Sequence record: AP018399.1
Length of the DNA stretch: 64,000 nt
Strand: one strand, 5' to 3'
Position numbers and translations under genes: made by a program. The notes below the pieces were generated by a model. The model made no database searches. It had not been told where the DNA came from and saw only the letters and a program-made list of their open reading frames with translations. This document shows, one piece after another, positions 8,475 to 37,508 of the stretch (positions within the stretch are counted from its first letter, which is position 1; the number at the start of each line of letters is the position of its first letter).

Positions 8475-10318
8475 CCCCAGAAGAACAGAACCCGCTTTCG
8501 CGATTCCAATCCTACGACATTAAGCACGTAATCATCGGATTCCGATTCTCGGAAGACGCTTGTATGTTCGATATCAAGGGTGACGTGGGCGTAACGGGTA
8601 GCACTGTGACCGGACCAAACTGTAAGGGTCCGGGTATTGTGGTCATCAATGAACTTGAAGACCCCACTTTTGTAATGTACAGCGCAGAAACGGTCTGGGA
8701 TTATTTCTCGGCCGCTAGTGCTACAACCGGCTCTTATGTTGGATACATGAATATCCAAGACCGCGTTGGTATGCTATTTGCCCAGCGTCTACGAAAGTAT
8801 TGCGAACAGCTAGGTATGGCCCTCGGTCACATTACATTCGCATGGAAGACATTCTACATCGGTAACCTGCCAGACGGTTCCAAGGAAATTGTAACCGCCA
8901 ATCCGATGATTTTTCACATCACCGACTTCATGCAGTCACTTTCGGCTCTTGACGGTCGTACTTACATTATGACATTTGTGTCATCTTATAACACATTTGG
9001 TCAGCTTCCTCAGTTCTCCAAGATGTTCCAGACCACCTTGACCCACGCTGACGGTAACGCTCAGAAGGAAATTCCGGGTGCAAACTCGGCAGGAAGTGGA
9101 TTGGTCAGCCGCGAAGAGGAAGACCGAATCAAGGAAGCTGCCCGTAAGGCTCGTCAGGATAAGACAAAGCCGATGAAGAATCTACAGGATGTGTTCGACG
9201 CCTTGCAAACCGAAATGACGGAGCAGAGCTATCCACATAAGACTCAGATTCAGGAATGGCAGACGACAATCCGTGATGACTATACCAAGAAGCTGATTCC
9301 ACCGAAGCAGTATCTACCGGAACTTCCAATCAAGTATACCGTCAAGCTTGAAGACAAATTCACTTCGTATAAGATTGACAACCGTAACCTACCGTTTGAA
9401 CAGCCGGAACAAGACCAGCGTCTTGAAGGTATCCGTTCAATTCCGTTCCACGTTGGGACGGATATGCCAACGGCCATTGACACATTGATGCTCATGTCCA
9501 AGTCTGTTGGTAAGGATTACCAAGGGGCATCACCACAGGGCTATCGCTCAACTGTGACCGTGCTTCGTGGCTGTTCCGGGGCATACAATGTCCACACTAA
9601 CATCAATTCGTATAAGATTCCTATCAACCGCGTAGACGGTCCAGATACCGGACCCGGTGACGGTGTGATTGGTGGTCCACTTGAATATGTTTATCAGGAC
9701 TCGGAACACAAGGGTCGTGACATTATCTCCATCCTATACCGTTCAAACGTTACCCCACTCCAACGCAATCTTGAGGAAGCTACGGAAGGTGCTGACGATA
9801 TCGGTGTGGTCTACGGTAATCGTGAACCTATTTCCATTCAGCGTATGCCACAGGTCGGTGATGACTTCTTCACTTCGGGCTATGCTGGTAACCGTGGTGC
9901 GGTCGGTCTATTGGACATTAATGGCCTTGAGAGTGCGGATACCGCCTCGGTCATCAAGTCCAACCTAGTCCCGTCATTGGTGAAACAAACAACAAGCTAC
10001 AACATCAAAATCGTCGGTAATCCGTACATCATCAATGACCTGAACCGCAACCCTATGGACGTTCGTGAGGGTCTTGGTCAAAATGTAGGTAAGAAACCCC
10101 GCTGGACTTACATTCTATACGACAAGCCGGAATACATTCCAATGTATTTGAAGCTAACTGTGTACATGCGACCGGAAGGTATGCTCTCCGGTGAGACGGA
10201 CGTTGACCAAACGTACTTCTATTCCGGGTACCTACATATTACGAGAGTCACCACGTCCTACGTCATGAGTTCATTTACTCAAATGATTGAAGGTGTTCGT
10301 ACAGAAGATAGCATCTAA
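8471..10318 (+). CDS. Putative baseplate hub protein (gp27-like position)
   Basis: 615 aa between gp53-like and gp5-like genes; C-terminal IKIVGNP...YSG.L.ITRV..SY..SSFTQ.I hub-like pattern. Confidence 0.5.
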   Translation: MTPEEQNPLSRFQSYDIKHVIIGFRFSEDACMFDIKGDVGVTGSTVTGPNCKGPGIVVINELEDPTFVMYSAETVWDYFSAASATTGSYVGYMNIQDRVGMLFAQRLRKYCEQLGMALGHITFAWKTFYIGNLPDGSKEIVTANPMIFHITDFMQSLSALDGRTYIMTFVSSYNTFGQLPQFSKMFQTTLTHADGNAQKEIPGANSAGSGLVSREEEDRIKEAARKARQDKTKPMKNLQDVFDALQTEMTEQSYPHKTQIQEWQTTIRDDYTKKLIPPKQYLPELPIKYTVKLEDKFTSYKIDNRNLPFEQPEQDQRLEGIRSIPFHVGTDMPTAIDTLMLMSKSVGKDYQGASPQGYRSTVTVLRGCSGAYNVHTNINSYKIPINRVDGPDTGPGDGVIGGPLEYVYQDSEHKGRDIISILYRSNVTPLQRNLEEATEGADDIGVVYGNREPISIQRMPQVGDDFFTSGYAGNRGAVGLLDINGLESADTASVIKSNLVPSLVKQTTSYNIKIVGNPYIINDLNRNPMDVREGLGQNVGKKPRWTYILYDKPEYIPMYLKLTVYMRPEGMLSGETDVDQTYFYSGYLHITRVTTSYVMSSFTQMIEGVRTEDSI

Positions 10319-23300: not shown

Positions 23301-26300
23301 GATGCTTATACTCAGACCAACGGCTTCCGTTACCGTAACATCAACGGTGAGAACTACGACGCCACAACTGGATTGAACAACAACTGGCAGACTGTAACCG
23401 AGAAGTTCATCAACTGGCTATATGCCCTACGTAACTTCCAGCAGGAAACCATGCTGTCTTATAAGGTCACTGGCAATGCGTCAAACGACTCGCTAGTGAT
23501 GCTAAACGGCACGGTTCCAAACTGGCAAAACGGTACACCGGTCATCTTGTTGGATGATGCTAACTCAACGCTACCAGCAGAGTTCAACAACCCGCTATCG
23601 TCAATCATCCCTTACTACGTAATTCGTGTACAGGGAAGCCTAACTGAGTTCAAGCTAGCCGCTACGGCGTATGATGCTGCGCGTGGTAATGCCATCCCAA
23701 TGACCGACAGCGGCGTTGGTGCATTCCGTGTGCAGGTTTACAAGGCCGTGTCTCAGTACCCAACTTACGAGTTGAACCCATTCAAGCATTACATTTGGGT
23801 TCACCATGAGCAGGGTGTCCTATCGAACGTGTTGGACGATGACTACACTGACCCAACCAGCGCAGCCCGTCTATACGATAACAACGGTATCGAATTGACC
23901 ACGGCCAACGTACTTGTGTTCCGTGAAGACAAGGAAAGTCGTATCTCCCTAACCGAAGATACGATTGCCCAGAACCGTCTAGCCGAAGAGCAGAACAAGC
24001 CGACAATGCATATGTCGGGTATGCACCTGTTCTTCGACGGCTACGAACACATGATTCGTTTCAACGATTACTCGGTTGACAATTCGCTAATCTACGACTC
24101 GTTCCTAGGCTTGAACACTCCACGCTTCTACGTGGAATTCGACCGTCAGCAAGACTTCACCCTACGTCCTAACGTGGGTGGTTTCTACATGCTAGGCGAA
24201 AGCTTGGTTCAGAACTTCGAATCGACAGTCAACGACATGCGTTACTACTACGACAGCGTGAAGGCACCGGAAGGTCGCGTCACAACTGACCTAGTTCGCA
24301 AGTCGCTTGGCTACGATGGTCCGAAGGACTACATGAGCGACCTAAAGATTAACCCGAAGACACAGTTCCAGTTCTGGCAGGCTATGATTCAGAACAAGGG
24401 TACGAACCGTGCGGTCCGTGCTTTCACGAACCAGTCAATCTTCGACTCCGCTGTGGTTGACGAATTCTGGGCTTATAAGCTGGCTGAATTCGGTGACAAC
24501 AAGGAACGTAATTACATTGAAATGAAGCTCTTCCCATCTGACGTGGTGAAGAACGACCTACGTATCGAATTCATTGCTCCTGAGAATGCTGCCATCGACA
24601 GCACCTTCACTGGTGTTGAACTAACGGACATGAACCGTTGGTGGGACCAGCCAGACCAGATTGAAGCAATGCGTCCATACGAAGCGTTCTTCTTCAACAC
24701 GAAGGTGAGCAGCATCATCGACAACATCGCGTCGGTTGTCCAGCGTATTGACAACCGTATCATTTACGTATTCAACGATTTTGTTGATAGCGTGGTGATG
24801 ACGTACTTCGACCCAACTACTCAGACAACCAAGGTGTTGAACGAGGGCGTTGAGTATCGCTTCCTAAACTCAAAGGTAATTGAGTTCCTAATCGAACCGG
24901 GCGTTCTACCGCCGATTACTGCCAGCACGTTGTCTTACGACTACGACGCCCAGAATCCGGCCAAGCTAATCGACAAGGACGCTGGTATTGTCCTAGCTAC
25001 TGTTCCATTCTGGCACCCGGCTATCGGCCAATACTACAACGTACCGTACTACGCTGTTGACCTACGTCGTCCAACCGACCCGGCAATCTACACGACTTCG
25101 CTAGATGGTGGTAACACCGGTAGCGCAACGTGGAAGAAGAACCATGTCGGAACCGTGTGGATGGATAGCAGCATCGAACAGTACCTACCGTACTTCGACA
25201 AGACTGTATACCCAGCTATCAACGACCGTATCAACAAGTGGGGTAAGCTAGCTGATTGGGCTGATATCAACCTGTACCAGTGGACCGAATCTACCGTCCC
25301 ACCGGAATCATATGATGAATTGGCACGTCGCCAGTCATTCGATATGTCCATTCCGGACGAAGACAAGGCAACTGGTGAAACCTACAAGTTGCTATACCAG
25401 AACGTCAACTACGATAGCCCGGACGATGTGGACGCACCGCCATTCTGGATTCAGATTCAGGATACACACTACGACTTCATCGCTGGTCTAAGCTCACAGG
25501 GCATGGATACAACGTTGGCTGGTAAGAAGGCCGAAATCTTCATCAACGGTAAATTCCTAGAAGCAATCACGTTTGAAGACGCTCAGGCTGTACACGCTTA
25601 CTTCGCACAGTTCAACTTCGGTGACTACTGTCACGCGATTGTTCGTGCCCATGTTCCGACCGCTGACGAAATTCAGGCCGGTGCGTATGCGTACTACACA
25701 CCACACAGCATCGAAAAGCGTTTCGATGTGAAGTCGGGTACGACATACAATGTCTACTACTATTGGGTCAAGGACAAGAAGCAGCCGGTATCACCATTGG
25801 CTACCAGCGTTTCTCTATACTCGGCCAAGAAGCAGCTTGTCGATATGTCCGACCCGTACATGATTCTACAGGGTGTACGTACTCCGGACTTCGGTTACGG
25901 CCTAATCTTCGGTCACGTATTCGATGAATTCGCTTACAATCTACCTTACCGCTACACCCAGATGATTGCCAAGGGTCTACATGGCACAGTGAAGGACAAC
26001 AACCGCACGGTTATGCGTTTCACTCGTGACTTCACCCTACGCGACAAGCTGGACAAGGACAGCATCACTCCGAAGAACAAGCATGAAGAGTGGAAGCTAT
26101 TCCGTGAGCAGCAGCTAGAGAAGGTTGACCGCTACCTATGGAACAAGGTGACTGAGGCTCTAATCGGCTTCAAGTTGAACCTAGACGCTACAGCAGCGAC
26201 CGATGAGGCCATCCCATCGTTGAACCGAATCCTATTCGACCGTATCTACCAAGCTGATACTCAGTACGGTATGGGCGACGAACAGGTATTCACCAACAAG

Positions 26301-27311
26301 GACTTGTCACGCCAGACCATCCTAGCGGTCCTAACCGACCCTAACCGTGAGTTTGAATACGTAAACATCGAAGAGTTCCTAGCACGCCATGACTTCCTAA
26401 CACCGGAAGATATCATCGCTGCCATGAATGAAATCTACTTGAACTTCTCAGTGTCAGAAGTCAACACGATTTTCTTCGCGGTCCTACACGATGCTATGAG
26501 CTTGAAGATGGAACATTCTGAAATCTTTAAGACTTCGTGGGTTGCTCTACAGATTTCGCAGAATGTCGTACCGTCGATTCCGATGCCATATGACGAGCTA
26601 CGTCTAGTTCCGGGTCCAGACTGTGCGGCTCCACCGCCGTCACCGTCTCCGACACCAACACCGACAACTACGCCGCAGCTAAGCCCAACACCTACTCCGA
26701 CACCGGACACCTGTGGCAACGGTCCAGATGACCGTATCCTTGAAGATGGTGAGGGACGTATCACGGAAGACGGTCAGTGCCGTATCGTTGAACCGTATGT
26801 GCCAGAGCCTACTCCGACACCTACACCAACACCTACACCGATTCCTCAGTGTGGCGATGGCGACGATGACCGTGTAACAGAAGACGGTGAAGGTCGCATC
26901 ACCGAAGATGGTGAGTGTCGCATTGTGGAACCAGTGGTTAATAATCGCCAGATTGTAGGTACGATGTATGTCTATGACATGGGAGAAGGTGGTCAAAATC
27001 TATGGATAGCAACCACCGAAGGCTATTGTGGTCCAGAGGTTATTACATCACTGGAAGCCGTGGGGGACTATGTAACCGTTGACCCTATCAATGACACATG
27101 GGATTGTCCAGTTACCGACCAAGAGTTCAATGACCCGGTTACATACTCAATCATTCTAGGACCAGAAGTTCCGGAAGGAAATGGTAATTGGGTGGCAAAT
27201 ACGGGCGCATTGAGCGGTTACAGCCCATCGTCTCGTCAATATGTAATGGAATTGATTGTGAATGGAACTGACACAATTTATGTGTGGATGGTAATTTCCG
27301 AGGGTGTATGA
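17370..27311 (+). CDS. Giant baseplate wedge/structural protein (gp7-like position), 3313 aa, C-terminal Pro/Thr tracts
   Basis: Uninterrupted ORF after gp6; GTG start with AGGA RBS and TAAATA at 17335-17340. Confidence 0.7.
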   Translation: MADNNSDYKKTNFNLNDFLPETNKGEFLDSLNKNLFNRYLTKDEFDHIVGIIGDADPNDKVTKPIKERTAFRQDNQLQPVVTEKIGSVNHFMGFEDFMTRIGRTGVDTEKFDQWGNALQFNWVPPIDLDKIVNYRDYYWNSTANPDHAIPQYIVIKSQKNWTAARYVQALKTIVDITGVVPVESFDIPTQKLMLPGNVASSYVAGNHLVLSQADGSLQLVTIASATYNFASTKTEIATVESFTLSSAANLSVYISPVELPVVSISGENLTLNGNFTNLLIEGYVVGVNTNPARLYTVKTSTFDTVTNVTTVTLDGLTVVGFNTLSLYPALALIQAEAEFTADNDTSYPTGGWDNNNIGKIFWYRNTEILNGTQGSTSLGSNILQDLTKNYLVFGIQNTDELQINVGNKNAGKYTINSVTPTTIQTNSGQFFSASTISYRVIRPFSFESISDSTPPLSPSLNQMWYNTATDTLSQWNGSTWNLVYIGISNLAKLVNDRIVTNFSNENDWSDDNEWVHTSQITEFTGMIRAQMPIIEYFPYLDMSETSYSEKVWRYRKDDALSYVDSAVGPKMIELMNFTYSGSEFTFPDVNTMQFDQKFGNFVGELEVGDEVVLSGFTQNDGIYTIATKEYYQPGPGQRYVSRITFTTPIISTTDLPMGANFGPYLTSNGDLFAGLDAKQWEFGGVQDIRASSLAPTKNPMLDVNVATGTSNGFEWILGLNSQTYSSQGNIVVEPTFFFDTSLHDLVLYDDYQEGDIRVYINGKRVYGAFEDLASWVDPDYVGGIKFINGYTVYASDIVRIELGEYAIEDIGLRAILVNTPIGNELYNLTNVRKIEQRKSESNQYPYFALRDIYGERLNLATSIFKYAESESSAINANVLKRIVTNGDGTDYTFVQELKDPATGRLYCYYDYQEVGDELQTIWKHGTYSEQYVPTKVDGAWEMPNQWYYNISHDNYTEVKLTEIFRHFKSIIDLQEQPGLFSKTAGLFFLDDQINYGVGGTIKEHNDGFDTLVSSIFVNNGNPTTIINFAKNEYDNQVRYVKERYYQEAADLFSNTALNVSDLQAAITESLINSVENNGKFDQWFGDTTSYDAATALGVRNWIATLPQFGLQPRSVPFSVQDSSLGMYEVHCHDGHVTNVAFNPAMTEQLVRRITANNPSISQVVASEAVPFPTDYEGNPLSTGIYLIRTNTTARTRKLYRFGGAAVWELVDVNAIFANTILEIENRLYAVAPEVFDARYDFTDVEADPAFEDLMEVQFLEYTRLEGISTPLNNSDRFRQNNPFTWNYYYSPIQNDPLTGLVSYNTAGTWQALYENVFGTAYPHLEPWVLQGYDNKPSWWDAQYADTTGSRRWTLTMWSNVFDGIIPVGQTAPNGNPGTGTVGQITNRFSYLPVNTGSVETDDGYGLDAILPPYWNTVNTTDARIRGLYDPNAGELVTTPQLNFEFGQNGLVEWEWRQSLSYLYDRMVVAYKIDPMRFMHETFGIDYQIVSCLQISKESEKVFSHKDTIFHGDFIDATNNIYKAYGLNQWYVHYQRYSGFDGISSEFRSLWKDWDTDLAYLVGAFLDTPSFSIESDFFDITTKDYEIAVKKTKGIADEWLTSLTATVLNVPSPYAKLRDQGIGWTVEISDNCPVARPIQYHPTQNYSVNVNTSGQPFRIFSYPLKGIELVPARGFQTVTYNSPVAMSSSTGLNPATTYTFEVEFNQTTLANATVLGSDAQTFGDLFNVLADQIGTAGSFGIENGNVVVYSASNAPTSSVVITDNTVFAATSGFVQLETPASTPNKFDGAFRIEGNFYSTFVDAGQITITYSTLFNGTYTIDRVYYDATTYQTLIFVKENVTLPSTGSVLVDGLLEPLNAKTLPPEWTTGTEVYFNTTGYLPNNFDDEVPYYVIRLSDREFRVAETKDAALKGVYVTPTSNALGEVFIGKILMTFQALGGQLTTYNWRHHAVDYRYVDSSSSNLMISGIQQVVDFLTGYDAYTQTNGFRYRNINGENYDATTGLNNNWQTVTEKFINWLYALRNFQQETMLSYKVTGNASNDSLVMLNGTVPNWQNGTPVILLDDANSTLPAEFNNPLSSIIPYYVIRVQGSLTEFKLAATAYDAARGNAIPMTDSGVGAFRVQVYKAVSQYPTYELNPFKHYIWVHHEQGVLSNVLDDDYTDPTSAARLYDNNGIELTTANVLVFREDKESRISLTEDTIAQNRLAEEQNKPTMHMSGMHLFFDGYEHMIRFNDYSVDNSLIYDSFLGLNTPRFYVEFDRQQDFTLRPNVGGFYMLGESLVQNFESTVNDMRYYYDSVKAPEGRVTTDLVRKSLGYDGPKDYMSDLKINPKTQFQFWQAMIQNKGTNRAVRAFTNQSIFDSAVVDEFWAYKLAEFGDNKERNYIEMKLFPSDVVKNDLRIEFIAPENAAIDSTFTGVELTDMNRWWDQPDQIEAMRPYEAFFFNTKVSSIIDNIASVVQRIDNRIIYVFNDFVDSVVMTYFDPTTQTTKVLNEGVEYRFLNSKVIEFLIEPGVLPPITASTLSYDYDAQNPAKLIDKDAGIVLATVPFWHPAIGQYYNVPYYAVDLRRPTDPAIYTTSLDGGNTGSATWKKNHVGTVWMDSSIEQYLPYFDKTVYPAINDRINKWGKLADWADINLYQWTESTVPPESYDELARRQSFDMSIPDEDKATGETYKLLYQNVNYDSPDDVDAPPFWIQIQDTHYDFIAGLSSQGMDTTLAGKKAEIFINGKFLEAITFEDAQAVHAYFAQFNFGDYCHAIVRAHVPTADEIQAGAYAYYTPHSIEKRFDVKSGTTYNVYYYWVKDKKQPVSPLATSVSLYSAKKQLVDMSDPYMILQGVRTPDFGYGLIFGHVFDEFAYNLPYRYTQMIAKGLHGTVKDNNRTVMRFTRDFTLRDKLDKDSITPKNKHEEWKLFREQQLEKVDRYLWNKVTEALIGFKLNLDATAATDEAIPSLNRILFDRIYQADTQYGMGDEQVFTNKDLSRQTILAVLTDPNREFEYVNIEEFLARHDFLTPEDIIAAMNEIYLNFSVSEVNTIFFAVLHDAMSLKMEHSEIFKTSWVALQISQNVVPSIPMPYDELRLVPGPDCAAPPPSPSPTPTPTTTPQLSPTPTPTPDTCGNGPDDRILEDGEGRITEDGQCRIVEPYVPEPTPTPTPTPTPIPQCGDGDDDRVTEDGEGRITEDGECRIVEPVVNNRQIVGTMYVYDMGEGGQNLWIATTEGYCGPEVITSLEAVGDYVTVDPINDTWDCPVTDQEFNDPVTYSIILGPEVPEGNGNWVANTGALSGYSPSSRQYVMELIVNGTDTIYVWMVISEGV
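26712..26933 (+). repeat. Two 28-aa Cys-flanked acidic repeats separated by a PT linker
   Basis: CGNGPDDRILEDGEGRITEDGQCRIVEP (26712-26795) and CGDGDDDRVTEDGEGRITEDGECRIVEP (26850-26933). Confidence 0.9.
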
Positions 27312-27849: not shown

Positions 27850-28563
27850 ATGTCCCAACGTATCAGTGACCTAACCCCCGTTTCAAGTATTGCCGGTGAC
27901 GAGCTAGTTGAAGTTGCCGTTCCCAATAGTGAATCTCCGACCGGATATGTAAGCCGCTCGGCAAGTACCTCCCTATTCGGTGGCGGTGGTGGACTACCAT
28001 ATCGCTTTACTTTCGAAATCAACGACGAGCCTATCGGCAGTGACCTATCATTCCAATTGTATTTGGAAAAGGGACAGTTTGATAGTACAGCATTCCGCCC
28101 AAATGCAGATTCGGACCCTGATGGTGACTGGACCCTAGCTACTGCTATCATGAATTTCAATGCTATTGCTGGCTTCCATTTCTCTTCGGAAGATAACTTC
28201 CAGTTTTACGCATTTTCACCGCTTAATTCATCGGTATGGGTAAACAAGATGGGCGGCGCTCTAGGAAGTGGTGCTGACTCGGATGCTGACCAGTTGCGTT
28301 GGGGTACATTCAATAACAGCAATGACCTATCAATTTACCAGATTCCCGATAACTACCCATCAAGCAACTACATGAATAACACTCCGGTAATTGCTCCGGT
28401 TGAAGTTTATGAAGATGGTAACTTCGGTCCGGACGGTTCTATTGTGATTCGCTTCCGCGTTGTATCTCCGTATAATGGATGGGGTACATACCCACAGACA
28501 TTCAGCCTCAAAGGATACGCCGATATTAACATGGCATTCAGCAACTTCTATCGTCCGGCATGA
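27850..28563 (+). CDS. Putative tail fibre/appendage protein
   Basis: N-terminal RISDLTPVSSIAGDELVEV fibre-type motif; exact TATAAATA at 27821-27828. Confidence 0.5.
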   Translation: MSQRISDLTPVSSIAGDELVEVAVPNSESPTGYVSRSASTSLFGGGGGLPYRFTFEINDEPIGSDLSFQLYLEKGQFDSTAFRPNADSDPDGDWTLATAIMNFNAIAGFHFSSEDNFQFYAFSPLNSSVWVNKMGGALGSGADSDADQLRWGTFNNSNDLSIYQIPDNYPSSNYMNNTPVIAPVEVYEDGNFGPDGSIVIRFRVVSPYNGWGTYPQTFSLKGYADINMAFSNFYRPA

Positions 28564-29228
28564 TTTTAAATTTTGAAGGACAGCACTCAGGGGACGTGAT
28601 TATGGCATTGCCGGTAATCACGTCCCTTCGGCTTTCCGGGGTAGACGTTAAAATTTATGTAGCCGAAGACTACAGGTATCTTCTAACAGGGCTTGGTCTG
28701 GAATATGTAAGTGAACCTATTGGCCCTAGGCTATCAACCCAAAACATTACCGGCCACGCTACTGAATTCTGGTTGGATTACTTCCGAGTAGAGCCGGTGA
28801 AGATGGACGTTCCGACTCTTCCTGCTACACCAACGGTGGTACTATCTCCGGATGCTCGTACACACGTTCGTAGATTTCCAAATGAATTCTGGGAAGCGAT
28901 TGTATGGTGGTGTAGTGACCGGAACCTGCCAGTGACGGTGATTGGTCCCAAGGATGCTGTCAAACGTAACGCATTCCTAAGCGGCCCAAACGTCACCAAC
29001 CTCACGGGTGAGCAGACGATTGAAGAAACCTACGCGACGCTGAAACATGCTCTGGCGGTCGTTACGACGGACACCGGAACATCACATCTATCCGATGCTT
29101 TGAACGATGTAACGGTCACAGCATTCCGTGTAAATAATGATGAAAAGTTTGCGCCATATTGGAATCGGAGAGTCGTGAAAGACTTATCCGGTGCGATAAA
29201 GCACCTTGAAACATTGATAAATAAGTGA
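28560..29228 (+). CDS. GT9 (heptosyltransferase-like) glycosyltransferase
   Basis: SGDVIMALP..., NLTGEQTIEETYATLKHALAVVTTDTGTSHLSDAL (D.G..H.A motif); ATGA overlap with upstream gene. Confidence 0.8.
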   Translation: MILNFEGQHSGDVIMALPVITSLRLSGVDVKIYVAEDYRYLLTGLGLEYVSEPIGPRLSTQNITGHATEFWLDYFRVEPVKMDVPTLPATPTVVLSPDARTHVRRFPNEFWEAIVWWCSDRNLPVTVIGPKDAVKRNAFLSGPNVTNLTGEQTIEETYATLKHALAVVTTDTGTSHLSDALNDVTVTAFRVNNDEKFAPYWNRRVVKDLSGAIKHLETLINK

Positions 29229-29247: not shown

Positions 29248-30456
29248 ATGTCGAACCCCGTAACACTAAATCTGCCAGTTCAGATTGACACTCGTGTCAT
29301 CATTTCGAACGCTGAAACTGGCGAAGTTCTGGTTGATAAGCCGAACTCAATCCACAGCCAGAACATGGCTCGTGTTCTAGCCCGTGGCCTTGCTCGTGAA
29401 GCCAACTATTACATTCGCCGCATGGCATTTGGTAACGGTGGTACATTCCGTGACGCTGCTGGTAACCTAGTCTACAACCCGCCGAATGACGGCCGTGACG
29501 GTAGCTGGGAATCTCGTTTGTATAACGAAACTTATTCCGAAATCATTGACGACTCTGACCCGCTATTCGGTGAAGACCCCGGTTCAGCCGAATCAGGTAA
29601 TATTCGTCCGGGTGGCGGTGCAATCCCGACCGACGACCCGACTGGTGCCGGTGTGGTGTCACAGGAAGTTGGTACCAAGTCCAACGTCATCTGTACTGTT
29701 TATTTGAATAACAACGAACCAATGGGTCAGGTGGATTCACACTACGACCCGGCCACGATTGCCAACCCAGACAACCGCTGCTTCCAGTTCGATGAACTTG
29801 GCCTATACAGCCCCGGCGCTCCGGCAACAGCCACTAACGGCTATTCGTCCGTAAACGTCAACGACGCGACCTCTGAGACGGCTACCACGCTGGCTCCTAA
29901 TACAACCTACCAGATTTCCATTGACGTTGACGGAATCACGTACAGCGCGATTCTGACGACTCCGGGCGGTGGTTCAGGTCCGACCAGCCAGTTCACCTAC
30001 GGTGATATCTGTGAAGGTATCAACACCGGCTCATGGATTACTGGCGGTGACCCAATCAATGACGTTGTGTACGTCTACATCACCGACCGTTCAGGTGGTA
30101 CGTACCCAACCATCATCGGCAAGCAGTCCTACGGCTTCCTACTGTTCCAGAGCAAGACCCTTGGTGCAGGCTCAAGTGTGAACCTGAACTGTTCAACTGC
30201 CAGCCCAACCAATTTCTTCAATGTTTTGACAAGTGGTTCATGTGTTAACGTGAATGTCAATCAGGAACAGGGTGAAAATGCTGGTGTTGCGAACGACCCC
30301 ACAAATCCGAGCAACGAACGCGAACGCCTCTTGACACATCTGATTTTTGACCCTATCCTTAAGTCCACATTCCGCTCATTGAAGATTGTGTACATACTAA
30401 CGGTATCAGTTCCTAAGACTACGGATAGTCAGACAGAAGTGGTAACAGGGGCATAA
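29248..30456 (+). CDS. Putative baseplate/fibre-attachment structural protein
   Basis: MAFGNGGT...RLYNETY...FDELGLY...LLTHLIFDPILKS; TAAATA at 29218-29223. Confidence 0.55.
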   Translation: MSNPVTLNLPVQIDTRVIISNAETGEVLVDKPNSIHSQNMARVLARGLAREANYYIRRMAFGNGGTFRDAAGNLVYNPPNDGRDGSWESRLYNETYSEIIDDSDPLFGEDPGSAESGNIRPGGGAIPTDDPTGAGVVSQEVGTKSNVICTVYLNNNEPMGQVDSHYDPATIANPDNRCFQFDELGLYSPGAPATATNGYSSVNVNDATSETATTLAPNTTYQISIDVDGITYSAILTTPGGGSGPTSQFTYGDICEGINTGSWITGGDPINDVVYVYITDRSGGTYPTIIGKQSYGFLLFQSKTLGAGSSVNLNCSTASPTNFFNVLTSGSCVNVNVNQEQGENAGVANDPTNPSNERERLLTHLIFDPILKSTFRSLKIVYILTVSVPKTTDSQTEVVTGA

Positions 30457-30480: not shown

Positions 30481-30547
30481 AGAAAATGTCCGCGAAAGCG
30501 GACATTTTCTTTTGTGCTAAACAAAATGTCCGCTTTCGCGGACATTT
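30481..30547. terminator. Bidirectional terminator formed by two inverted copies of one GAAA hairpin
   Basis: AGAAAATGTCCGC-GAAA-GCGGACATTTTCT then AAATGTCCGC-TTTC-GCGGACATTT, between convergent operons. Confidence 0.85.
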
Positions 30548-30550
30548 ATG

Positions 30551-32191
30551 TTAGTTCTTGTAGTGTTCATTCTCTCGTCGGGTCTTCCCGTCGTAATGGT
30601 ACACGCGATTGTGGTTGATGACCGTCGCTAGCAGGCTACCGACCTTCAACTTCCCTTCACGCATGTGCATCATGGTCTGGCTCATCCAAGTCTGTTCATA
30701 AAGGTGAGCGTACTGGACTTCCTTGAAGACGACCTGTGTACCCTTCTTCGTGAACATGATAGGCCAGTTGCAGTAGTGGTATTCACCTACTGCGTATGGC
30801 AGACCCTTATGGCTGTTGGTGTAGAACACCTTGGTCGCCCAATTCTCACCACCCTTCTCCGGTTCCGGGAAGTATTCCTGACGCTTGTGTTCGGGAAGAT
30901 TCTTGTAGGCCCAATTGTGGTGGTTGTCACCATAGAACTCGGTGAAGGCAAGCTTCAAGTAATCTAGCTGCTCATTCTTCATGATATCCATGCACTTGTC
31001 GAACACGTCATCGTGGAAGGTTGTGAAACCCATCTTACACGGAGCCGCACCACGCTGCTGCATTAGCATGTCGTCTTCGAAGAACACCATGTAATTGTGC
31101 TTGGATTCTAGGAAGTGTTCTGCTGCGAACTGACGACCGCCATTGATGCCGATGTTGTCCTTCTTGAACTCTTCGAAACCATACTTCTCAAACAATGCCT
31201 TGTACTTCTTGTCTACACGCTTGTCGGTGGAGTTGTTGATAACGTACTTACGAACCTGTTTGAACACGTCTGGGAACGCCGAAATGAATGACTCAGCCCA
31301 TAGTTCAAACTGCTGTGGTAGATTATAAGTTAGCACGTATACGGCTAGTTCCTCTTCCACGTCCGGCAAGGGTCGGTCTTTTAGGTCTTGTAGGTAACGG
31401 TAAACTAGACCGTTGCTCTCAATCATACGTACATTCACCTTTTCTGGATGCTTGTATGCGATGATAGTGAAGATGGATTCCTCGGTACCCATCAATCCCT
31501 GATTCAACGAGTCGTTCAACAAACCGTAGTAGATATCGTTGATATCGTTGATTATGTGCTTCGGACCACCGAAGATACCACCACGGCACACGTACTGCGT
31601 ATCAGCACCGGCCATACGGTTCATGGCATTCTTTTCAAAGCCGTGAACTTCTAGGGTACCGTCATACGGGAACGCGACGTAGAGCATCTTGTTCATGTCC
31701 TGCGTAACGCGACGTTCGAAGTCAGCGTCCAAGTAAGCAGTAGGGTCGCCAATGGTATTTGCAATACCGGCGTCAATCCATAGGTAATACTTGGTGTCGA
31801 AGAAGTTGAAGTGGGTAGCGTCGTTCAAGAAGAACTGCTTGGACATTACAAGTGGGTTGTATAGCTCAAGCTTGGCCTGAGTGGAGTCCGGTAGCCAACC
31901 TGCGTAATTGAACCACTTCTCATCGGTACGAATCTTTTGTACTTGGTCGTAGAACGGGAACGCACGAAGGTCATCCAGCGTCTTGAAAATCAGACGGGTG
32001 TTCTCCTGCTTACGATACTTCCAGATGGTTTCTGCGAGCTTTTCTTCACAGTAGATTACCATCGGATAATCCACCTTCAATAGCTTGCTGAACGACTCAA
32101 CGTAGTGGTCGAACGAACGCTTGAAGCCGGAATCCAAGTCTCCGCGACCAAGGTCAAATAGGGCTGTAACTAGGGTAAGATTGCCGGCCAT
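30551..32191 (-). CDS. HtrL/YibB-family glycosyltransferase-like domain fused to a GT-A (GT2-like) domain
   Basis: LTLVTALFDLGR, YLWIDAG, GGIFGG, GTEESI; second domain AVYVLTYN...YVINNSTD...NIGINGGRQ...MVFFEDDML. Confidence 0.75.
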   Translation of the reverse strand: MAGNLTLVTALFDLGRGDLDSGFKRSFDHYVESFSKLLKVDYPMVIYCEEKLAETIWKYRKQENTRLIFKTLDDLRAFPFYDQVQKIRTDEKWFNYAGWLPDSTQAKLELYNPLVMSKQFFLNDATHFNFFDTKYYLWIDAGIANTIGDPTAYLDADFERRVTQDMNKMLYVAFPYDGTLEVHGFEKNAMNRMAGADTQYVCRGGIFGGPKHIINDINDIYYGLLNDSLNQGLMGTEESIFTIIAYKHPEKVNVRMIESNGLVYRYLQDLKDRPLPDVEEELAVYVLTYNLPQQFELWAESFISAFPDVFKQVRKYVINNSTDKRVDKKYKALFEKYGFEEFKKDNIGINGGRQFAAEHFLESKHNYMVFFEDDMLMQQRGAAPCKMGFTTFHDDVFDKCMDIMKNEQLDYLKLAFTEFYGDNHHNWAYKNLPEHKRQEYFPEPEKGGENWATKVFYTNSHKGLPYAVGEYHYCNWPIMFTKKGTQVVFKEVQYAHLYEQTWMSQTMMHMREGKLKVGSLLATVINHNRVYHYDGKTRRENEHYKN

Positions 32192-32194
32192 TGC

Positions 32195-32935
32195 TTAAAT
32201 AATCCTCATAATTTTGTCGTGATGTAGATACCTAAATGTATGTAGAACTGGATTTGTTCGCATGAAATTCAGGATGGGTGTATTGGGTAGATTCGACTCA
32301 CTCATGGCGTAAGAAATCTCCAAAGCTTCAATGAACGGGTTGATTCCTCGGTCATGGCAGCGCTTGGTAATCTCAACCCATGTGTCCATGAATGTCTTGA
32401 ATTCCGGACAATTTGGCTTGAAGAACATGAACACTTCGATGGGCATCTTGGCCTTAATCTTATTCATGTCGATACTCAACGCCTGAGCCTTCGGGTCCAG
32501 TAGGAACGCGATACCACCTTCCTCGCATGGACGATTGCGGAAGCGAGCGATTAGACCCTGTTCCGGCTGTGCGATGAAGTTCTGGAAGTCTTCTTCGTCC
32601 CAGCCAATCAGGAAGCCGTCAGCATCCGAATGGATAATCATGTCGTAACCGCCACGTTCGTATGCTACCTTCGTAGGTAGAATCTTCAAATTGAAGTTGA
32701 ACATGCGTTCAGCAAACCAAATGTTTTGGTCAGACACCGACTTGAATTCCACGATATGGATTCGGTTGGCGTCAAGTTCCGGATGCTCATTCACGTAGGT
32801 CGTCAATTCCTTAACATCATCGGTGATGACAATCACATCACCCTTGGTTAGAAGGTTGACGCAATCAATCAGAGTGCGGACTTTGTAATTGTGTTCCACG
32901 CCAAGGGCGAGGCTTGCGAATGCATACTTATGCAC
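32195..32935 (-). CDS. GT-A-like glycosyltransferase (DxD)
   Basis: VIVITDD, FNFNLK, IIHSDADGFL; co-transcribed with the GT cluster. Confidence 0.55.
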   Translation of the reverse strand: MHKYAFASLALGVEHNYKVRTLIDCVNLLTKGDVIVITDDVKELTTYVNEHPELDANRIHIVEFKSVSDQNIWFAERMFNFNLKILPTKVAYERGGYDMIIHSDADGFLIGWDEEDFQNFIAQPEQGLIARFRNRPCEEGGIAFLLDPKAQALSIDMNKIKAKMPIEVFMFFKPNCPEFKTFMDTWVEITKRCHDRGINPFIEALEISYAMSESNLPNTPILNFMRTNPVLHTFRYLHHDKIMRII

Positions 32936-33788
32936 GAATCACCTTAAAGAAATCTGAGAACGCTACGTGAACGTTCGGGTCGTACAGGTCAATCGGCCAG
33001 TCGTCATGGTACCAGCTATTGAACTTGAAATTTGTGTAAAGCTCTGGCTCACGCTGGTGAAGGTAGTACATGATTTCCTCTTCCTTGAGAAGAACGTCAT
33101 GGTCAATCACAAGCTGCATGTGCGTCGTTGCCTTGCCGATGTAATCCAACAGTACGTCACGCTTGCCGCCGAAGATACCGCCGATTACGGCGTATTCTGG
33201 ACGGTCTGGGTAGACTTGTACGTAATCGTCAGAGCCGTGGTTCACGGTCTGTGACAGGATATTCAGCACCTTGTCGCCAGCGTGCTTGTTCAGGTCTTCA
33301 AATAGATTACGCTTCTGGTTGATGAGGTCGAAATCGTAGAACGACTTACTCTCTGGACTACGGAACTTATTGGTAATCAGGCCACCGTGGAAGATACCGG
33401 CATCAATCCAGTACAGGCTATCGCCAGCTTCTAGCTCCGTGGTATTCTTCCAGAGCCAGTAGAACTTACCCCACATGATTTCCACACAGCGGGAACGCCA
33501 TGCATCTTCGGTAGTGTACTTCGCCTTACGGTCCTTGATGGCTTCAATCTGCTGATGGAAGTAGTTCTCGGATAGTTCCTCGACAACCAACTTGACATTC
33601 GGATGATTCTCAAACCAATTGGTCAAGTCTTCCAGATGCGCAGAAGCAGTATAGCAGACGATGGAGTAGCCACCGTCTGCCAGAGAGCGAAGCGAAAGTT
33701 TGTAGCGGTCATAGATGGCCGCTGTGTTACCGTTATATCGTGTGCCCTCTAGTCCAGTATAGATTGCAGTTACGAATTGGGGCTTCAC
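32928..33788 (-). CDS. HtrL/YibB-family glycosyltransferase-like protein
   Basis: FVTAIY, MWGKFYWL, LYWIDAGI, GGIFGG, EEEIM; paralogue of 30551..32191. Confidence 0.7.
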   Translation of the reverse strand: MKPQFVTAIYTGLEGTRYNGNTAAIYDRYKLSLRSLADGGYSIVCYTASAHLEDLTNWFENHPNVKLVVEELSENYFHQQIEAIKDRKAKYTTEDAWRSRCVEIMWGKFYWLWKNTTELEAGDSLYWIDAGIFHGGLITNKFRSPESKSFYDFDLINQKRNLFEDLNKHAGDKVLNILSQTVNHGSDDYVQVYPDRPEYAVIGGIFGGKRDVLLDYIGKATTHMQLVIDHDVLLKEEEIMYYLHQREPELYTNFKFNSWYHDDWPIDLYDPNVHVAFSDFFKVIRA

Positions 33789-33790
33789 GG

Positions 33791-36088
33791 TTATTCCTCT
33801 ATCAATTTAACCTTGTCTACTGCGCCTAGAATGGCTGGGGCTAGGTATTCATGGTCTAGGTTACTGACCTTGCCTAGCTGGCAGTACCATAGGTACATTG
33901 CCTCCCACTGATTGCTTAGCCATTCTACATTTTCAAAATTGCCACCGAAGAACTTCACTGATGGGTGTAGTTCGCCCATACCACGACCGAACTTGTCACT
34001 CAACCACTTCTCATCGAATGTCGTGTTGACGATATCACGCTTAGCCGATAGGATTAGGTGTGAATTGTTCTGCGACATTGTAATTAGATTGTTCAAGTCC
34101 TTCTGGAAGGTCGCCGGGTCGAACTGAGCTAGGTCAACGAAGACGTGGTGTGAAGCCATGTAGCGGTCTTCGTTCAACGCTTCCTTCGTCCATAGCAGAC
34201 GAATCTTGTCATAGGCACCAACGACCGTCTTCTCTCCGTGGTAGTTCTTGAGGTACACATGACGCGGTTCCACAGTGTAGACATGGAAGCCAGTCAGGTC
34301 ATGCTTAGCCTTGGTGGACTCTTCGGTGATGATGACTACATTGTCCTTACCACGTAGAGCCGCTAGGTTCTTGGCAATCGTTTCGTGCTGGTCCGGAGAC
34401 TGTTCGAACACGAACGCATTGACGCCCATTCCTGCGCGAGCCTTCTTCGAAGTGAATACCGGCGAACGCTTGAACTTACGGGCATCCTTCTTCTTGAAGA
34501 TGAGGTTACCCTTGTAGTAGATAGCGTCCATTTCCGAGTTGTCTAGGATGGAGAATGCATCCGATAGACGGGTCAGAATTGGCTTACCATTCACGTTGAA
34601 CGAAGTGTTCAAGATGACAGCATGACCGGCGTGCTTTTCGAACTCGGTGATTAGGTCATAGATTAGTTCGTTCTGTAGACGGGTCACCGTCTGTAGACGA
34701 GCCGTACCGTCCGTGTGGGTGATGGCCGGGAGCGTTGCCTTGTACTCTTCACGCACGTTGGCGACGAACGTCATATGACGCGACTCAACGTTGTAGTCGT
34801 AGTGGAAATACTTGTTGGCATCCTCTAGACGCACGATAGGAGCGAACGGACGGTACCATTCACGATGCTTGACCTTGTGGTTCAGCACATCCTTCATGTC
34901 GCCTGACGGGTTACAGATGATTGAGCGATTGCCTAGCGCACGCGAACCATGTTCCGAATTACCTTGGATTAGACCGACGATGTTGTTGTCAGCCACGAAC
35001 TCAGCAAGCTCCTGAACCGTCACGTTCTCGTAAACGAAATACTTTGACTGGTCCTGAATGTAGGTTGAGAATTCCTTGTCGTCCAGAATCGGTAGACCGG
35101 AGTAGGTCAGGTCAACCGGGTACTTCGGAGCGATGTGCCATAGCAGGCCACCAGCGGAGATACCACAGTCGCTAGTGTTCGGCGGAACGAAGACGTTACC
35201 ACCCTTGATTTCAAGCAGACGAGCGTTCAGAAGAACGTTCAGACCACAACCACCAGACACGACTAGCGGAATGTGACTGTACTGTTCTAGGAACGGCCCT
35301 GCCAATTCAAGGAAGACTTCCTCAAAGGCTTTCTGGGTCGTAGCAGCGATATCCCAAGCGACCTGACCGCTAAAGCGCGTCTTTTCAAAGTCAAATCCTT
35401 CGAATAGACCGATAGCGGTTAGTAGGTCGGTGACAGCCTTGGTTCGCAGTTCTAGACCACCGATGTAGGAGTCTCCACTGTATACGAATTGCTTGTAGTA
35501 GTGTTTGAAGGCATCCATCCACTCTTCGCGGACGGTACCATACGAGCATAGACCCATCAGCTTACCGGCATACACAAGGTTGCCGATGCTCAAGGAATCT
35601 CGCTTGATATCCTCAAGGTAGTCGGCAAGCAGCATGTATGGGAAGCCAAGGTCATTAGGTAGACGATGGATGAGCTTGATACCTGTGTTTCGGTCAGCTT
35701 CGTAGAAATTGAAGTAGCTACCATCACCGCCACCGTCGAACGAAATGGCTAGAGCCTTGTCGAACGGTGACTGGTAGAAAGCAGCCGCAGCATGTGCAAC
35801 ATGGTGGTCTGCGGCTAGTTGCTTCTTGTACTTGAACTTCGGAACAATCTTGCTCACGTAACCGGTGATGTAAACGTCAACTTCTGTCTTACCAGCCTTG
35901 GCTAGAAGCCAATCGGTAATCTCATCGAACACCACCTGTGGATGTGAACACGGCATGTAATTCACCAAGCCGATGTTCTTTGAGTTCAACCAACGTTCTA
36001 CTTCAACTACAGTGTATTCGCCCTTGTAATACATTGAGATTGCGGCGTTATGGGAACCATACGCCGAAATCACCAGATAATCGTTCAT
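33791..36088 (-). CDS. NodU/CmcH/TobZ-family O-carbamoyltransferase with C-terminal degenerate HtrL-like domain
   Basis: HHVAHAAAAFYQSPF, FDGGGD, GKLMGL, GGCGLN, D.GIS.G, EHGSRALGNRSI, REWYRPFAP, H.DGTARLQTV, LNTSFN..GKPI. Confidence 0.92.
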   Translation of the reverse strand: MNDYLVISAYGSHNAAISMYYKGEYTVVEVERWLNSKNIGLVNYMPCSHPQVVFDEITDWLLAKAGKTEVDVYITGYVSKIVPKFKYKKQLAADHHVAHAAAAFYQSPFDKALAISFDGGGDGSYFNFYEADRNTGIKLIHRLPNDLGFPYMLLADYLEDIKRDSLSIGNLVYAGKLMGLCSYGTVREEWMDAFKHYYKQFVYSGDSYIGGLELRTKAVTDLLTAIGLFEGFDFEKTRFSGQVAWDIAATTQKAFEEVFLELAGPFLEQYSHIPLVVSGGCGLNVLLNARLLEIKGGNVFVPPNTSDCGISAGGLLWHIAPKYPVDLTYSGLPILDDKEFSTYIQDQSKYFVYENVTVQELAEFVADNNIVGLIQGNSEHGSRALGNRSIICNPSGDMKDVLNHKVKHREWYRPFAPIVRLEDANKYFHYDYNVESRHMTFVANVREEYKATLPAITHTDGTARLQTVTRLQNELIYDLITEFEKHAGHAVILNTSFNVNGKPILTRLSDAFSILDNSEMDAIYYKGNLIFKKKDARKFKRSPVFTSKKARAGMGVNAFVFEQSPDQHETIAKNLAALRGKDNVVIITEESTKAKHDLTGFHVYTVEPRHVYLKNYHGEKTVVGAYDKIRLLWTKEALNEDRYMASHHVFVDLAQFDPATFQKDLNNLITMSQNNSHLILSAKRDIVNTTFDEKWLSDKFGRGMGELHPSVKFFGGNFENVEWLSNQWEAMYLWYCQLGKVSNLDHEYLAPAILGAVDKVKLIEE

Positions 36089-36134: not shown

Positions 36135-37508
36135 TTAGACTGTAACTGGCTTGGCGATACGATTGCCCCAACCCTTCGACGCACTGTGCGGCCATACGAT
36201 GTACTGCGTAGCAGCCTGATTGCCACGCCAAATTAGGCGGAAGTCAATCCATTCGTTCTGGACGTAAGCCTTGATTTCGTGCGGCTGTGCGTCCTTACGG
36301 AAGATTTCCTTACCCTCTGCGTCAGCCGAACCGACGTACCAGAATGTCATGTCATCCGGTAGCGTTCCGTCTGGGAAGGTTAGTTCGTTGCGGTGGATTA
36401 GAACGCGGATATCATGCGAACCCACGAAGGTTCCCTTCCACTGTTCCTCATTCTCATACACGAAGTCGCCCGGTGGTTCTAGACGGTCGATGGTCTTCTG
36501 CTGAACACCACGGTACTTGAAGCTGATACCGGCGTACTGTTCGTACTCAAGCACGGTGCGTGCAGTACCGAAACCGTACTTGCCGAAATCAATCTGTGAC
36601 GGGTCTTCACCATCCATTCCAAATAGAATGCGGTTACGCTTGTGGCATAGGTCATTACGCTGGACCCAATCTAGCTCCACACGGCCCTTATTCTTCTGTG
36701 CAGTGGTGTGGTCGTCCCAAACCTTGGTACGGCCCTTACGGGTGTACTCGTGCCATGCGATTAGGCGGTGCGGGTGATACAGGTCATAGCCGTGAGTGTA
36801 TGCACGGACAGCGATGGAGATTTCTTCACCGTGGAAGAAGTATTCCGGGTCGTGCTGAACTTCTTCTGCGAAGATGCCATCGGCAAATGCGAAGTGAGCA
36901 GAGAAGAAGCGAGCGCGCATCGGTTCAGTGAGTTCCTTCCAGTTGTCGATAGTTGACGGAATGAAGAACACAGCACCTTCCGGAATGAAGCGGTCAAAGT
37001 CCATCTTCCACGGGTCTTGTACGCGAGCGCCGGGGTCATTCTCTGGGTCGAACGACGGAATGTAAGCGGTTAGAAGCGGCTTCGGTGACTTGGTACGAAG
37101 ACCTTCTAGCATTTCGATAGCGACCTCATCCCAGCCTTCAACGAAGCGGTGGTGAGAGTCAAGCTGCATGGTATACTTTTCCTTGGAGTATAGCTGCTGA
37201 ATCTGGTTACGTGCCCAGCAAGCGCCCTTGGTCTTATGGAAGTGAATGTCGATGACAGACAGCTTGGTGCCTTCTGGGCTTACGACGTTCAGGACAGTCG
37301 CACCACCAACACGCTGGTCTTCGGAAAAGCCTTCAACAACGAAGCCAGCATCTAGGAAAATGTCGGTCGGTTCGTCTTCACCATGCTGCCAGCAGATACC
37401 TACGTGTAGGTTCTCTGGATGCTTGGCGTTCTCAATCATGTTGCGTAGGGTAGGAATCAACTGCGGGTCGCGGTACGCGGCCATCTGAACGTAAATGGTA
37501 TTGGTCAT
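36135..37508 (-). CDS. GT60-like polypeptide/hydroxyproline alpha-GlcNAc transferase (Skp1 GlcNAcT/Gnt1 family)
   Basis: TIYVQMAAYRDPQL, GICWQ, KGACWAR, QLDSHHRF (DxH), KPLLTAY, FSAHFAF, FF.GEEISIAVRAYTHGYDLY.P. Confidence 0.85.
   Translation of the reverse strand: MTNTIYVQMAAYRDPQLIPTLRNMIENAKHPENLHVGICWQHGEDEPTDIFLDAGFVVEGFSEDQRVGGATVLNVVSPEGTKLSVIDIHFHKTKGACWARNQIQQLYSKEKYTMQLDSHHRFVEGWDEVAIEMLEGLRTKSPKPLLTAYIPSFDPENDPGARVQDPWKMDFDRFIPEGAVFFIPSTIDNWKELTEPMRARFFSAHFAFADGIFAEEVQHDPEYFFHGEEISIAVRAYTHGYDLYHPHRLIAWHEYTRKGRTKVWDDHTTAQKNKGRVELDWVQRNDLCHKRNRILFGMDGEDPSQIDFGKYGFGTARTVLEYEQYAGISFKYRGVQQKTIDRLEPPGDFVYENEEQWKGTFVGSHDIRVLIHRNELTFPDGTLPDDMTFWYVGSADAEGKEIFRKDAQPHEIKAYVQNEWIDFRLIWRGNQAATQYIVWPHSASKGWGNRIAKPVTV

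Follow-up and report, generated by a model that had tools for sequence, protein, structure and literature searches.

O-Carbamoyltransferases of the NodU/TobZ family are described from Nod-factor and antibiotic clusters, and their phage relatives are usually annotated as nodulation-like or pyrimidine-synthesis proteins or, since 2021, suspected of modifying DNA. According to Yang et al. (eLife 2021, PMC8670742), a 63-kDa phage carbamoyltransferase encoded beside a thymidylate-synthase homolog converts 5-hydroxymethylcytosine (5hmC) into 5-carbamoyloxymethylcytosine with ATP and carbamoyl phosphate; the authors also report that carbamoyltransferases on unmodified contigs have glycosyltransferases on their flanks. 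Here we analysed a window of 64,000 nucleotides from the jumbo myovirus XacN1 (384,670 bp), a Xanthomonas phage of the citrus-canker bacterium; the 8 kb around the gene described below match the phage sequence with 100% identity. The window covers positions 186001-250000 of record AP018399.1 (record coordinate = window coordinate + 186000), and coordinates below are those of the window. Its gene ORF333 (33791..36088, minus strand; BBA65481.1) encodes a protein of 765 residues from an ATG start, whose sole existing annotation is "carbamoyl transferase" and in which a carbamoyltransferase is followed by an HtrL-like tail. We consider it somewhat probable that ORF333 is an active O-carbamoyltransferase working on a sugar of a glycan initiated with N-acetylglucosamine (GlcNAc), and that its tail is a pseudo-glycosyltransferase.

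To judge from domain matches and motifs, residues 1-531 of ORF333 form a complete NodU/TobZ-type carbamoyltransferase. Pfam identified a Kae1-like N-terminal domain (Carbam_trans_N, PF02543, residues 61-313, 35150..35908, minus strand, E 5e-27) with the motifs HHxxH and DGGGD, in which the aligned metal-site aspartate is D307, and a YrdC-like C-terminal domain (Carbam_trans_C, PF16861, residues 362-530, 34499..35005, minus strand, E 5e-57 over profile positions 1-168 of 170) with the motifs GNSEHGSRALGNRS, KxREWYRPFAP and NTSFN. PHROG 1601 ("Nol-like carbamoyltransferase") spans residues 5-531, and the NCBIfam NodU model matched with an E value of 4e-52, well below its equivalog cut-off. The Pfam and PHROG spans thus confine the carbamoyltransferase signal to the first ~531 residues. 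The best solved relatives, namely the unnamed carbamoyltransferase 7xb6, TobZ, NovN and GdmN, likewise all cover the first ~530 residues only. Aligned with TobZ, ORF333 has the His-His-Asp metal site in its Kae1-like domain (HHxxH, that is HxxxH, with DGxG and SD) and the carbamoyl-phosphate/ATP motifs GxxExGxRALGxRS, KxREWxRPFAP and NTSFN in its YrdC-like part. These catalytic motifs are invariant in 17 close homologs. Searching IMG/VR with the alignment of ORF333 retrieved 589 relatives, and the best 80 loci were taken further; nine checked motif residues, H95, H99, D118 and D307 among them, do not vary in any of the 81 XacN1-type relatives. G386 and R388, the counterparts of TobZ G421 and R423, are also invariant within this clade. 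Since its motifs are conserved, the ORF333 carbamoyltransferase would be active. The domain is followed by a strongly basic linker (residues 532-550, 34439..34495, minus strand) of low model confidence, whose RKFxRS core is invariant in the 17 aligned close homologs.

The tail proper (residues 551-765, 33794..34438, minus strand) escaped direct sequence comparison. Scans of residues 532-765 with Pfam (E ≤ 10) and NCBIfam (E ≤ 1) gave no match, HtrL included, which leaves the tail short of the family-model threshold of HtrL_YibB (PF09612). BLASTP revealed no similarity between the tail and the products of the neighbouring genes ORF330, ORF331 and ORF332, and hhalign of a profile against a single sequence was not significant: the signal comes from comparisons of family profiles with one another and from structure. 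The AlphaFold2 model of the tail, built from a 22-sequence alignment, is a sandwich of alternating strands and helices with a mean local confidence (pLDDT) of 89 and a predicted template-modelling (TM) score (pTM) of 0.85. Foldseek searches of the Protein Data Bank with this model returned enzymes of the glycosyltransferase A (GT-A) fold, KdsB and the GT6 alpha-1,3-galactosyltransferase/ABO transferases, at E values of about 2e-6; among the Swiss-Prot models the top match was E. coli HtrL (E 9.6e-7, TM 0.55/0.47). In the AlphaFold clusters and viral models, the nearest neighbours were uncharacterised GT-A domains from viral sequence sets, several of them fused to methyltransferases. A structure search of the ESM Atlas with residues 540-765 found PF09612 HtrL in 6 of the 10 nearest cluster sets, with TM scores of 0.65-0.74 by query. 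The tail thus has a predicted GT-A fold with HtrL proteins as its nearest structures.

We then compared a profile of the 28-sequence tail family with that of the 59-sequence HtrL-domain family from the cassette. The two profiles are collinear across 185-196 columns (P 0.001-0.005), and their score of 30.7 exceeds that of the reversed control (16.9), of 40 column shuffles (best 22.0) and of 40 block shuffles (best 24.3). The families of ORF331, of the C-terminal half of ORF330 and of ORF329 scored at chance level against the tail profile. In the alignment, VFVDLA of the tail pairs with LWIDAG of HtrL, and FFGG with FGG. The DLA triplet (D652-L653-A654, 34127..34135, minus strand), aligned with the DAG of the HtrL motif WIDAG, closes strand 114-121 in the tail model, where GT-A enzymes carry their DXD motif. 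Its aspartate is found in 18 of the 28 tail homologs and is replaced by asparagine in 6 and by serine in 3, so that the conserved DXD, or an equivalent, of active GT-A glycosyltransferases is missing. Most of the HtrL signature is lost as well. HtrL has 52 positions with a conservation of at least 90%; the XacN1 tail has the identical residue at 8 of them, and 16 are unaligned. For the first-strand motif TxVT..R and for R16, R25 and R60 the alignment offers no counterpart; E181 and H183 (motif EvHGF), R203 (RGG) and E237 (GTEES) pair with unlike residues; and the tail lacks a long insert that separates the second strand of HtrL from the SK motif. From the phage-HtrL motif set (TxVT..R, WIDAG, EvHGF, RGGxFGG, GTEES), the aromatic-x-Asp element and FGG alone persist. 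Taken together, the fold and the collinear profile alignment, with 8 of 52 conserved positions identical, lead us to class the tail, on modelling and alignment grounds, as an HtrL-derived or HtrL-like GT-A domain that fails HtrL's own sequence criteria.

Degenerate as it is, the tail is maintained. Proteins of about 765 residues that carry it fall into 20 protein clusters with 47-97% identity; the full-length fusion is kept in 8 loci and occurs in more than 25 independent sequences overall. The fusion is genuine and no artefact. An exhaustive HMMER search with the tail yielded only carbamoyltransferase fusions or fragments thereof and nothing with an assigned function; one 225-residue match is a fragment or possibly a stand-alone copy. 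Comparison of XacN1 with phage Xoo-sp13 gave pN/pS values of 0.153/0.880 in the tail and of 0.085/0.784 in the core, synonymous sites being saturated; nonsynonymous differences are far rarer than synonymous ones in both, and purifying selection thus acts on the tail. The maximum-likelihood tree of the cores unites the tail-bearing enzymes in a single clade (support 100/100): the tail was acquired once, in a clade of jumbo phages. Its carriers are 7 of the 80 viral loci, on contigs of 20 to 350 kb (four above 100 kb), together with XacN1 and Xoo-sp13. Even a distant tail-bearing protein, 31% identical in its tail, is encoded in a five-gene order identical to that of XacN1. We also considered that the tail might correspond, through a shifted gene boundary, to the N-terminal extensions of ~200-270 residues found on the ORF330 homologs of tail-less cassettes; this idea was rejected, the motif-identifiable extensions being methyltransferases of the FkbM, TylF and class-I types.

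These data bear on the function of the tail. As it is degenerate yet under purifying selection, a role in acceptor binding is plausible: an HtrL-type GT-A relic that has lost most of the conserved polar residues would most likely transfer no sugar, and would probably hold the glycan or a nucleotide-sugar, or dock ORF333 onto the glycosyltransferase assembly line. Alternatively, the tail could still be an active, metal-independent glycosyltransferase, and ORF333 a bifunctional enzyme that adds a sugar and then carbamoylates it. Some GT-A enzymes are metal-free and use basic residues instead. HtrL proteins themselves lack DXD, the selected fold is that of GT-A enzymes, some charged positions changed conservatively (HtrL K118 to R/K, D124 to E and E238 to D), and W102, K104 and E198 in tail numbering, which correspond to W633, K635 and E729 of ORF333, are invariant across the tail family. 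We nevertheless judge this bifunctional enzyme to be unlikely, given the missing nucleotide-binding strand motif at the N-terminus and the other unaligned or unlike residues listed above, the exchange of the DXD-position aspartate for Asn or Ser among homologs, and the presence of five other glycosyltransferase-like domains in the operon.

ORF333 belongs to a block of five co-directional genes, ORF334 to ORF330, with gaps of 46 nt after ORF334, 2 nt after ORF333 and 3 nt after ORF331, and with an 8-nt overlap between ORF332 and ORF331. The first gene, ORF334 (36135..37508, minus strand), matches the Pfam "GlcNAc" family PF11397 with an E value of 3e-77. Pfam describes this family as the one to which the cytoplasmic polypeptide GlcNAc-transferase acting on Skp1 hydroxyproline belongs. 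ORF332 (32928..33788, minus strand), annotated as "predicted ORF" and missed by Pfam, keeps WIDAG and GGIFGG intact and aligns with the family of the ORF330 N-terminal domain (hhalign probability 99.5%, E 3e-22); by this comparison it is clearly a newly recognised HtrL-family protein. ORF331 (32195..32935, minus strand) has no Pfam match; its language-model and structure neighbours (GT8/GT6, nucleotide-diphospho-sugar transferase-like) provide a lead towards a small GT-A-like protein. ORF330 combines an HtrL_YibB domain (residues 5-254, 31430..32179, minus strand), recognised by Pfam and NCBIfam, with a C-terminal half (residues 266-546, 30551..31396, minus strand) that always accompanies it and whose GT2-like neighbours are likewise a lead. 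In none of the operon products does a hydrophobic 19-residue window reach the usual level of a membrane helix. The convergent genes ORF329 and ORF330 are separated by 94 bp, in which pattern matching detected a perfect hairpin with a 10-bp stem (30524..30547), a candidate for a bidirectional terminator at the end of the operon. A preliminary description of this DNA had placed all NodU/TobZ motifs of ORF333 in its first ~535 residues, found the remaining ~230 to resemble the neighbouring HtrL domains, with DAG eroded to DLA, and read the whole as a fusion. The domain spans, which end at 530 (Pfam) and 531 (PHROG), agree with the first point; the HtrL likeness is borne out by structure and profile alignment, although no family model detects it; the plural "domains" is justified by ORF332 and the N-terminal half of ORF330; and the fusion recurs at full length in the independent sequences counted above.

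We counted homologs within 8 kb of the carbamoyltransferase gene in the 80 viral loci. An ORF334 homolog is present in 67 of them, an ORF330 homolog with both halves in 65 (63 for the C-terminal half) and an ORF332 homolog in 27. The core trio of carbamoyltransferase, PF11397 transferase and HtrL protein thus recurs in about 65 of 80 related loci, usually in the order GlcNAc-transferase, carbamoyltransferase, (ORF332), ORF330. The XacN1 order is also found in Xoo-sp13 and in tail-bearing viral contigs, some of them without ORF331 or ORF332. The ORF330 homolog begins with an additional domain in 27 of the loci without a tail, and the domains identifiable by motifs are of the FkbM, TylF or class-I S-adenosylmethionine-dependent methyltransferase type (examples among loci L016-L089 are L019:4201-6594, L024:10497-12854 and L040:10644-13013). 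Such phages would carbamoylate and methylate the same product. Two further loci (L017:9645-12920 and L086:1-3405) encode triple fusions of a carbamoyltransferase, a bona fide HtrL domain and a GT2-like half, 1092-1135 residues from stop to stop. These form a clade of their own (100/100) and arose independently of the ORF333 fusion; that of L017 adjoins a separate, second carbamoyltransferase gene. In S-SCSM1 and Bellamy, two cyanophages in culture, the homolog is surrounded by nucleotide-sugar epimerases, UDP-glucose dehydrogenase, glycosyltransferases and a methyltransferase. By their gene content, the operon and its relatives appear to be glycan-building cassettes, which supports a glycan rather than DNA as the acceptor.

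We therefore propose, for ORF333 as a carbamoyltransferase of a GlcNAc-initiated glycan, the following scheme. By analogy with TobZ, the YrdC-like domain would convert carbamoyl phosphate and ATP into carbamoyl-AMP, and the carbamoyl group would then be passed to a hydroxyl held at the Kae1-like metal site. The acceptor would most likely be a sugar of the glycan built in the cytoplasm by ORF334, ORF332, ORF331 and ORF330, where ORF334 would start the chain and the HtrL and GT-A products would lengthen it. The likely carriers are virion proteins: at least two XacN1 virion proteins are periodic-acid-Schiff-positive (PMC5852040). A possible substrate is encoded next to the operon. ORF329 (29248..30456, plus strand; phrog_11259, function unknown) contains 19% Ser + Thr. 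It adjoins the cassette in 7 of the 8 other tail-bearing loci (the sequence of L012 breaks off just past its carbamoyltransferase gene) and is next to the cassette in no locus without the tail; it may be a glycosylation substrate, or a mere marker of the lineage through shared ancestry.

The operon could instead remodel a glycan of the host envelope, such as the lipopolysaccharide core, xanthan or another exopolysaccharide, which ORF333 would then carbamoylate. E. coli htrL/yibB is associated with lipopolysaccharide biosynthesis loci, HtrL is named in a paper on the lipooligosaccharide outer-core loci of Acinetobacter, and a truncated GT9 heptosyltransferase-like gene with its best match in Xanthomonas lies close by. 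This gene, however, is outside the conserved cassette, all the operon products look soluble, PF11397, the family matched by ORF334, comprises cytoplasmic polypeptide GlcNAc-transferases by its Pfam description, and glycoproteins are present on XacN1 virions. A host-envelope acceptor is thus distinctly unlikely. The truncated gene, ORF328 (28560-29228, plus strand; "glycosyltransferase family 9"), encodes 222 residues that match positions 104-225 of 247 of the heptosyltransferase profile, that is its C-terminal half, and is absent from Xoo-sp13.

A third possibility is a nucleotide-sugar as the acceptor. UDP-GlcNAc or a comparable donor would be bound by the tail and carbamoylated by the core, and the modified sugar would then be transferred by a partner glycosyltransferase. 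GT-A domains bind nucleotide-sugars by ancestry, the fusion sets such a domain beside the catalytic core, and fusions of a carbamoyltransferase with an HtrL-type domain arose twice independently. However, no part of HtrL is more clearly lost in the tail than its nucleotide-binding strand motif, tail-less relatives in the same cassette do without it, and NodU and TobZ act on finished scaffolds, all of which makes carbamoylation of a nucleotide-sugar quite unlikely.

Finally, ORF333 could carbamoylate 5hmC in phage DNA or nucleotides. To compare it with enzymes of this kind, we used the carbamoyltransferase of the sewage phage BF503P2, which infects Bacteroides (L095:4990-6825), and 58 viral relatives (L096-L153). 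This contrast clade was assigned by genomic context and stands in for the published 5hmC enzyme sequence. The BF503P2 gene lies two genes from an annotated deoxycytidine monophosphate (dCMP) hydroxymethylase, and the aligned BF503P2 hydroxymethylases have Asp at position 177 (E. coli thymidylate synthase numbering). A gene resembling T4 gp42 is present within 6 kb in 50 of 59 contrast loci but in 0 of 80 XacN1-type loci on viral contigs; conversely, none of the 59 contrast loci has a homolog of the GlcNAc-transferase or of HtrL. The XacN1-type and hydroxymethylase-linked sets split cleanly, with a branch length of 4.3 and a support of 1.0. The positions of TobZ W408, G421 and R423 are flagged by Yang et al. 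(PMC8670742) as differentially conserved, although the accessible text names no residues. At these positions XacN1 carries L, G and R, and the hydroxymethylase-linked enzymes carry I/L/V, C and T. The sets differ at two of the three: all 81 XacN1-type sequences have G at the G421 position and R at the R423 position, whereas of the 54 hydroxymethylase-linked sequences 50 have C at the former and all have T at the latter. The hydroxymethylase-linked clade further has Asn and Met where sugar-type enzymes carry K407 and R413. By its context, the contrast clade is probably the 5hmC-modifying one; relative to a reference defined in this way, ORF333 falls outside it in clade as well as in residues.

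The XacN1 genome was read over its whole unique part plus one terminal repeat. Its sole ThyA homolog, ORF392, has PPCH and PFN, corresponding to His147 and Asn177 of the E. coli enzyme, in place of the Asp of hydroxymethylases, and matches canonical thymidylate synthases with an E value of 1e-72; by this Asn/His signature it is a thymidylate (dTMP) synthase. ORF392 (L009:5246-6136, outside the window) has eukaryotic and protozoan enzymes as its closest solved relatives. The XacN1 paper assigned thymidylate synthase/dihydrofolate reductase to ORF186 (L003:31584-32138, outside the window), which is a dihydrofolate reductase only. Genome-wide, we found no homolog of T4 gp42, gp56, beta-glucosyltransferase or the Bacteroides-phage hydroxymethylase apart from the ThyA homolog ORF392. 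The cluster ORF197-202 of methyltransferases and a dioxygenase was considered as a cytosine methylase + TET pair and rejected: it is a Pnkp/Hen1 RNA-repair set with an AlkB-type oxygenase, in which ORF197-199 (L003:37019-40093, outside the window) are the Pnkp ligase, the Hen1 methyltransferase and the kinase. The carbamoyltransferases of the cyanophages Sf-FP1 and S-RIM44 were likewise discarded as comparisons, being short split genes beside a 213-residue synthase and thus uninformative. That of Synechococcus phage Sf-FP1 (L094:3373-5625), directly after the 213-residue "thymidylate synthase", is split into two genes whose order is permuted, the YrdC-like part preceding the Kae1-like one. C5-modified cytosine blocks both BssHII and NaeI. 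The mapping of XacN1 DNA employed these two enzymes and SpeI (PMC5852040), which also speaks against a C5 modification. Although phage enzymes of this kind exist in the same Pfam families (PMC8670742), the operon sits a few kb from RNase H and DNA polymerase genes and the linker is basic, the ThyA signature, the missing hydroxymethylase, the clade split, the residues and the observations of the XacN1 paper together make a 5hmC role very unlikely, with hardly any probability left to it. The preference of the preliminary description for a glycan over DNA is thereby strengthened, on the side of the cassettes as well as by the lack of hydroxymethylase, dCTPase and beta-glucosyltransferase homologs; the two checks it had proposed, a genome search for a dCMP hydroxymethylase and a phylogeny against 5hmC carbamoyltransferases, gave a canonical ThyA as the only homolog and a position of XacN1 outside the context-defined clade.

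Several points weigh against the reading of ORF333 as a glycan carbamoyltransferase with a pseudo-glycosyltransferase tail. Its activity and its glycan are predicted. The tail is missing from most cassettes, which function without it; it is thus an accessory whose role could be trivial. In the model of the full-length protein (pTM 0.58), the packing of the tail against the catalytic domains is not fixed. A characterised member of the HtrL family was not found in the literature, so that "glycosyltransferase" is for HtrL itself an annotation; and as HtrL has DAG rather than DXD, loss of DXD alone is no proof of inactivity. Routes to modified bases through 2-oxoglutarate-dependent dioxygenases (TET/5mYOX) were checked among the annotated XacN1 candidates only and not by an exhaustive search. 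Finally, the periodic-acid-Schiff-positive bands of XacN1 were not matched to named proteins, and hence give no identity for the carrier (PMC5852040).

The ORF333 gene was annotated and its core family well known beforehand. In the searchable literature we found neither the tail nor the cassette nor carbamoylated glycans of phages described, and no report of a carbamoylated glycan on any virus particle. The recurrence of the cassette indicates a widespread, uncharacterised glycan-tailoring system of phages. As a tentative and more far-reaching picture, XacN1-like jumbo phages and, by way of the tail-less cassette, hundreds of mostly aquatic phages might O-glycosylate their own virion proteins with a GlcNAc-initiated, carbamoylated and often methylated glycan, and the carbamoyltransferase of the jumbo lineage might have captured a dead HtrL as a glycan reader. 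The tail would then exemplify a glycosyltransferase fold reused as a non-catalytic module of a different transferase. In practical terms, the separation of the two carbamoyltransferase clades by context and by two residues close to the active site offers a simple annotation rule. With XacN1 in culture, periodic-acid-Schiff-positive virion proteins and a public virion proteome (ProteomeXchange PXD008065), the prediction is directly testable.

Two further genes were observed in passing. ORF325 (17370-27311, plus strand) encodes 3313 residues without a Pfam match and directly follows the genes of the baseplate wedge and of a spike protein that is VgrG/lysozyme-like (10318-13098). Outside the window, ORF185 (L003:31002-31574) is a homolog of the anti-CBASS phosphodiesterase Acb1 (E 4e-43).

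Compared with described systems, ORF333 is closest to the NodU/NolO/TobZ/NovN/GdmN enzymes (PF02543 + PF16861), with which it shares both domains and all aligned metal-site and carbamoyl-phosphate/ATP motifs, and with TobZ also the residues at G421 and R423. It differs from them by a C-terminal extension of 234 residues with a GT-A fold and by its origin, a phage gene in a glycosyltransferase operon instead of a Nod-factor or antibiotic cluster. With the phage 5hmC carbamoyltransferase (PMC8670742) it has in common the two Pfam families and the phage origin; that enzyme is of 63 kDa and lies by a thymidylate-synthase homolog, whereas ORF333 has 765 residues and belongs to a sugar operon in a genome where no hydroxymethylase was found. 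The "Nol-like carbamoyltransferases" of cyanophages and pelagiphages (such as S-SCSM1, Bellamy, P-SSM2 and HTVC008M), treated in the literature as sporadic auxiliary metabolic genes and once as part of pyrimidine synthesis, are homologous to the ORF333 core (29-41% identity) but tail-less; the two nearest, from S-SCSM1 and Bellamy, lie like ORF333 in sugar-metabolism clusters. HtrL/YibB (PF09612) is the nearest fold neighbour of the tail, collinear in alignment and with aromatic-x-Asp and FGG in common, while the tail differs in matching no family model, in keeping 8 of 52 conserved positions and in lacking the long insert. A parallel in concept is GtfB of the streptococcal O-GlcNAc transferase GtfA-GtfB, in which a non-catalytic glycosyltransferase fold binds the acceptor and aids the neighbouring catalytic unit. 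GtfB is of the GT-B fold and forms a subunit of its own that aids a glycosyltransferase, whereas the tail of ORF333 would be a GT-A relic fused to a carbamoyltransferase.

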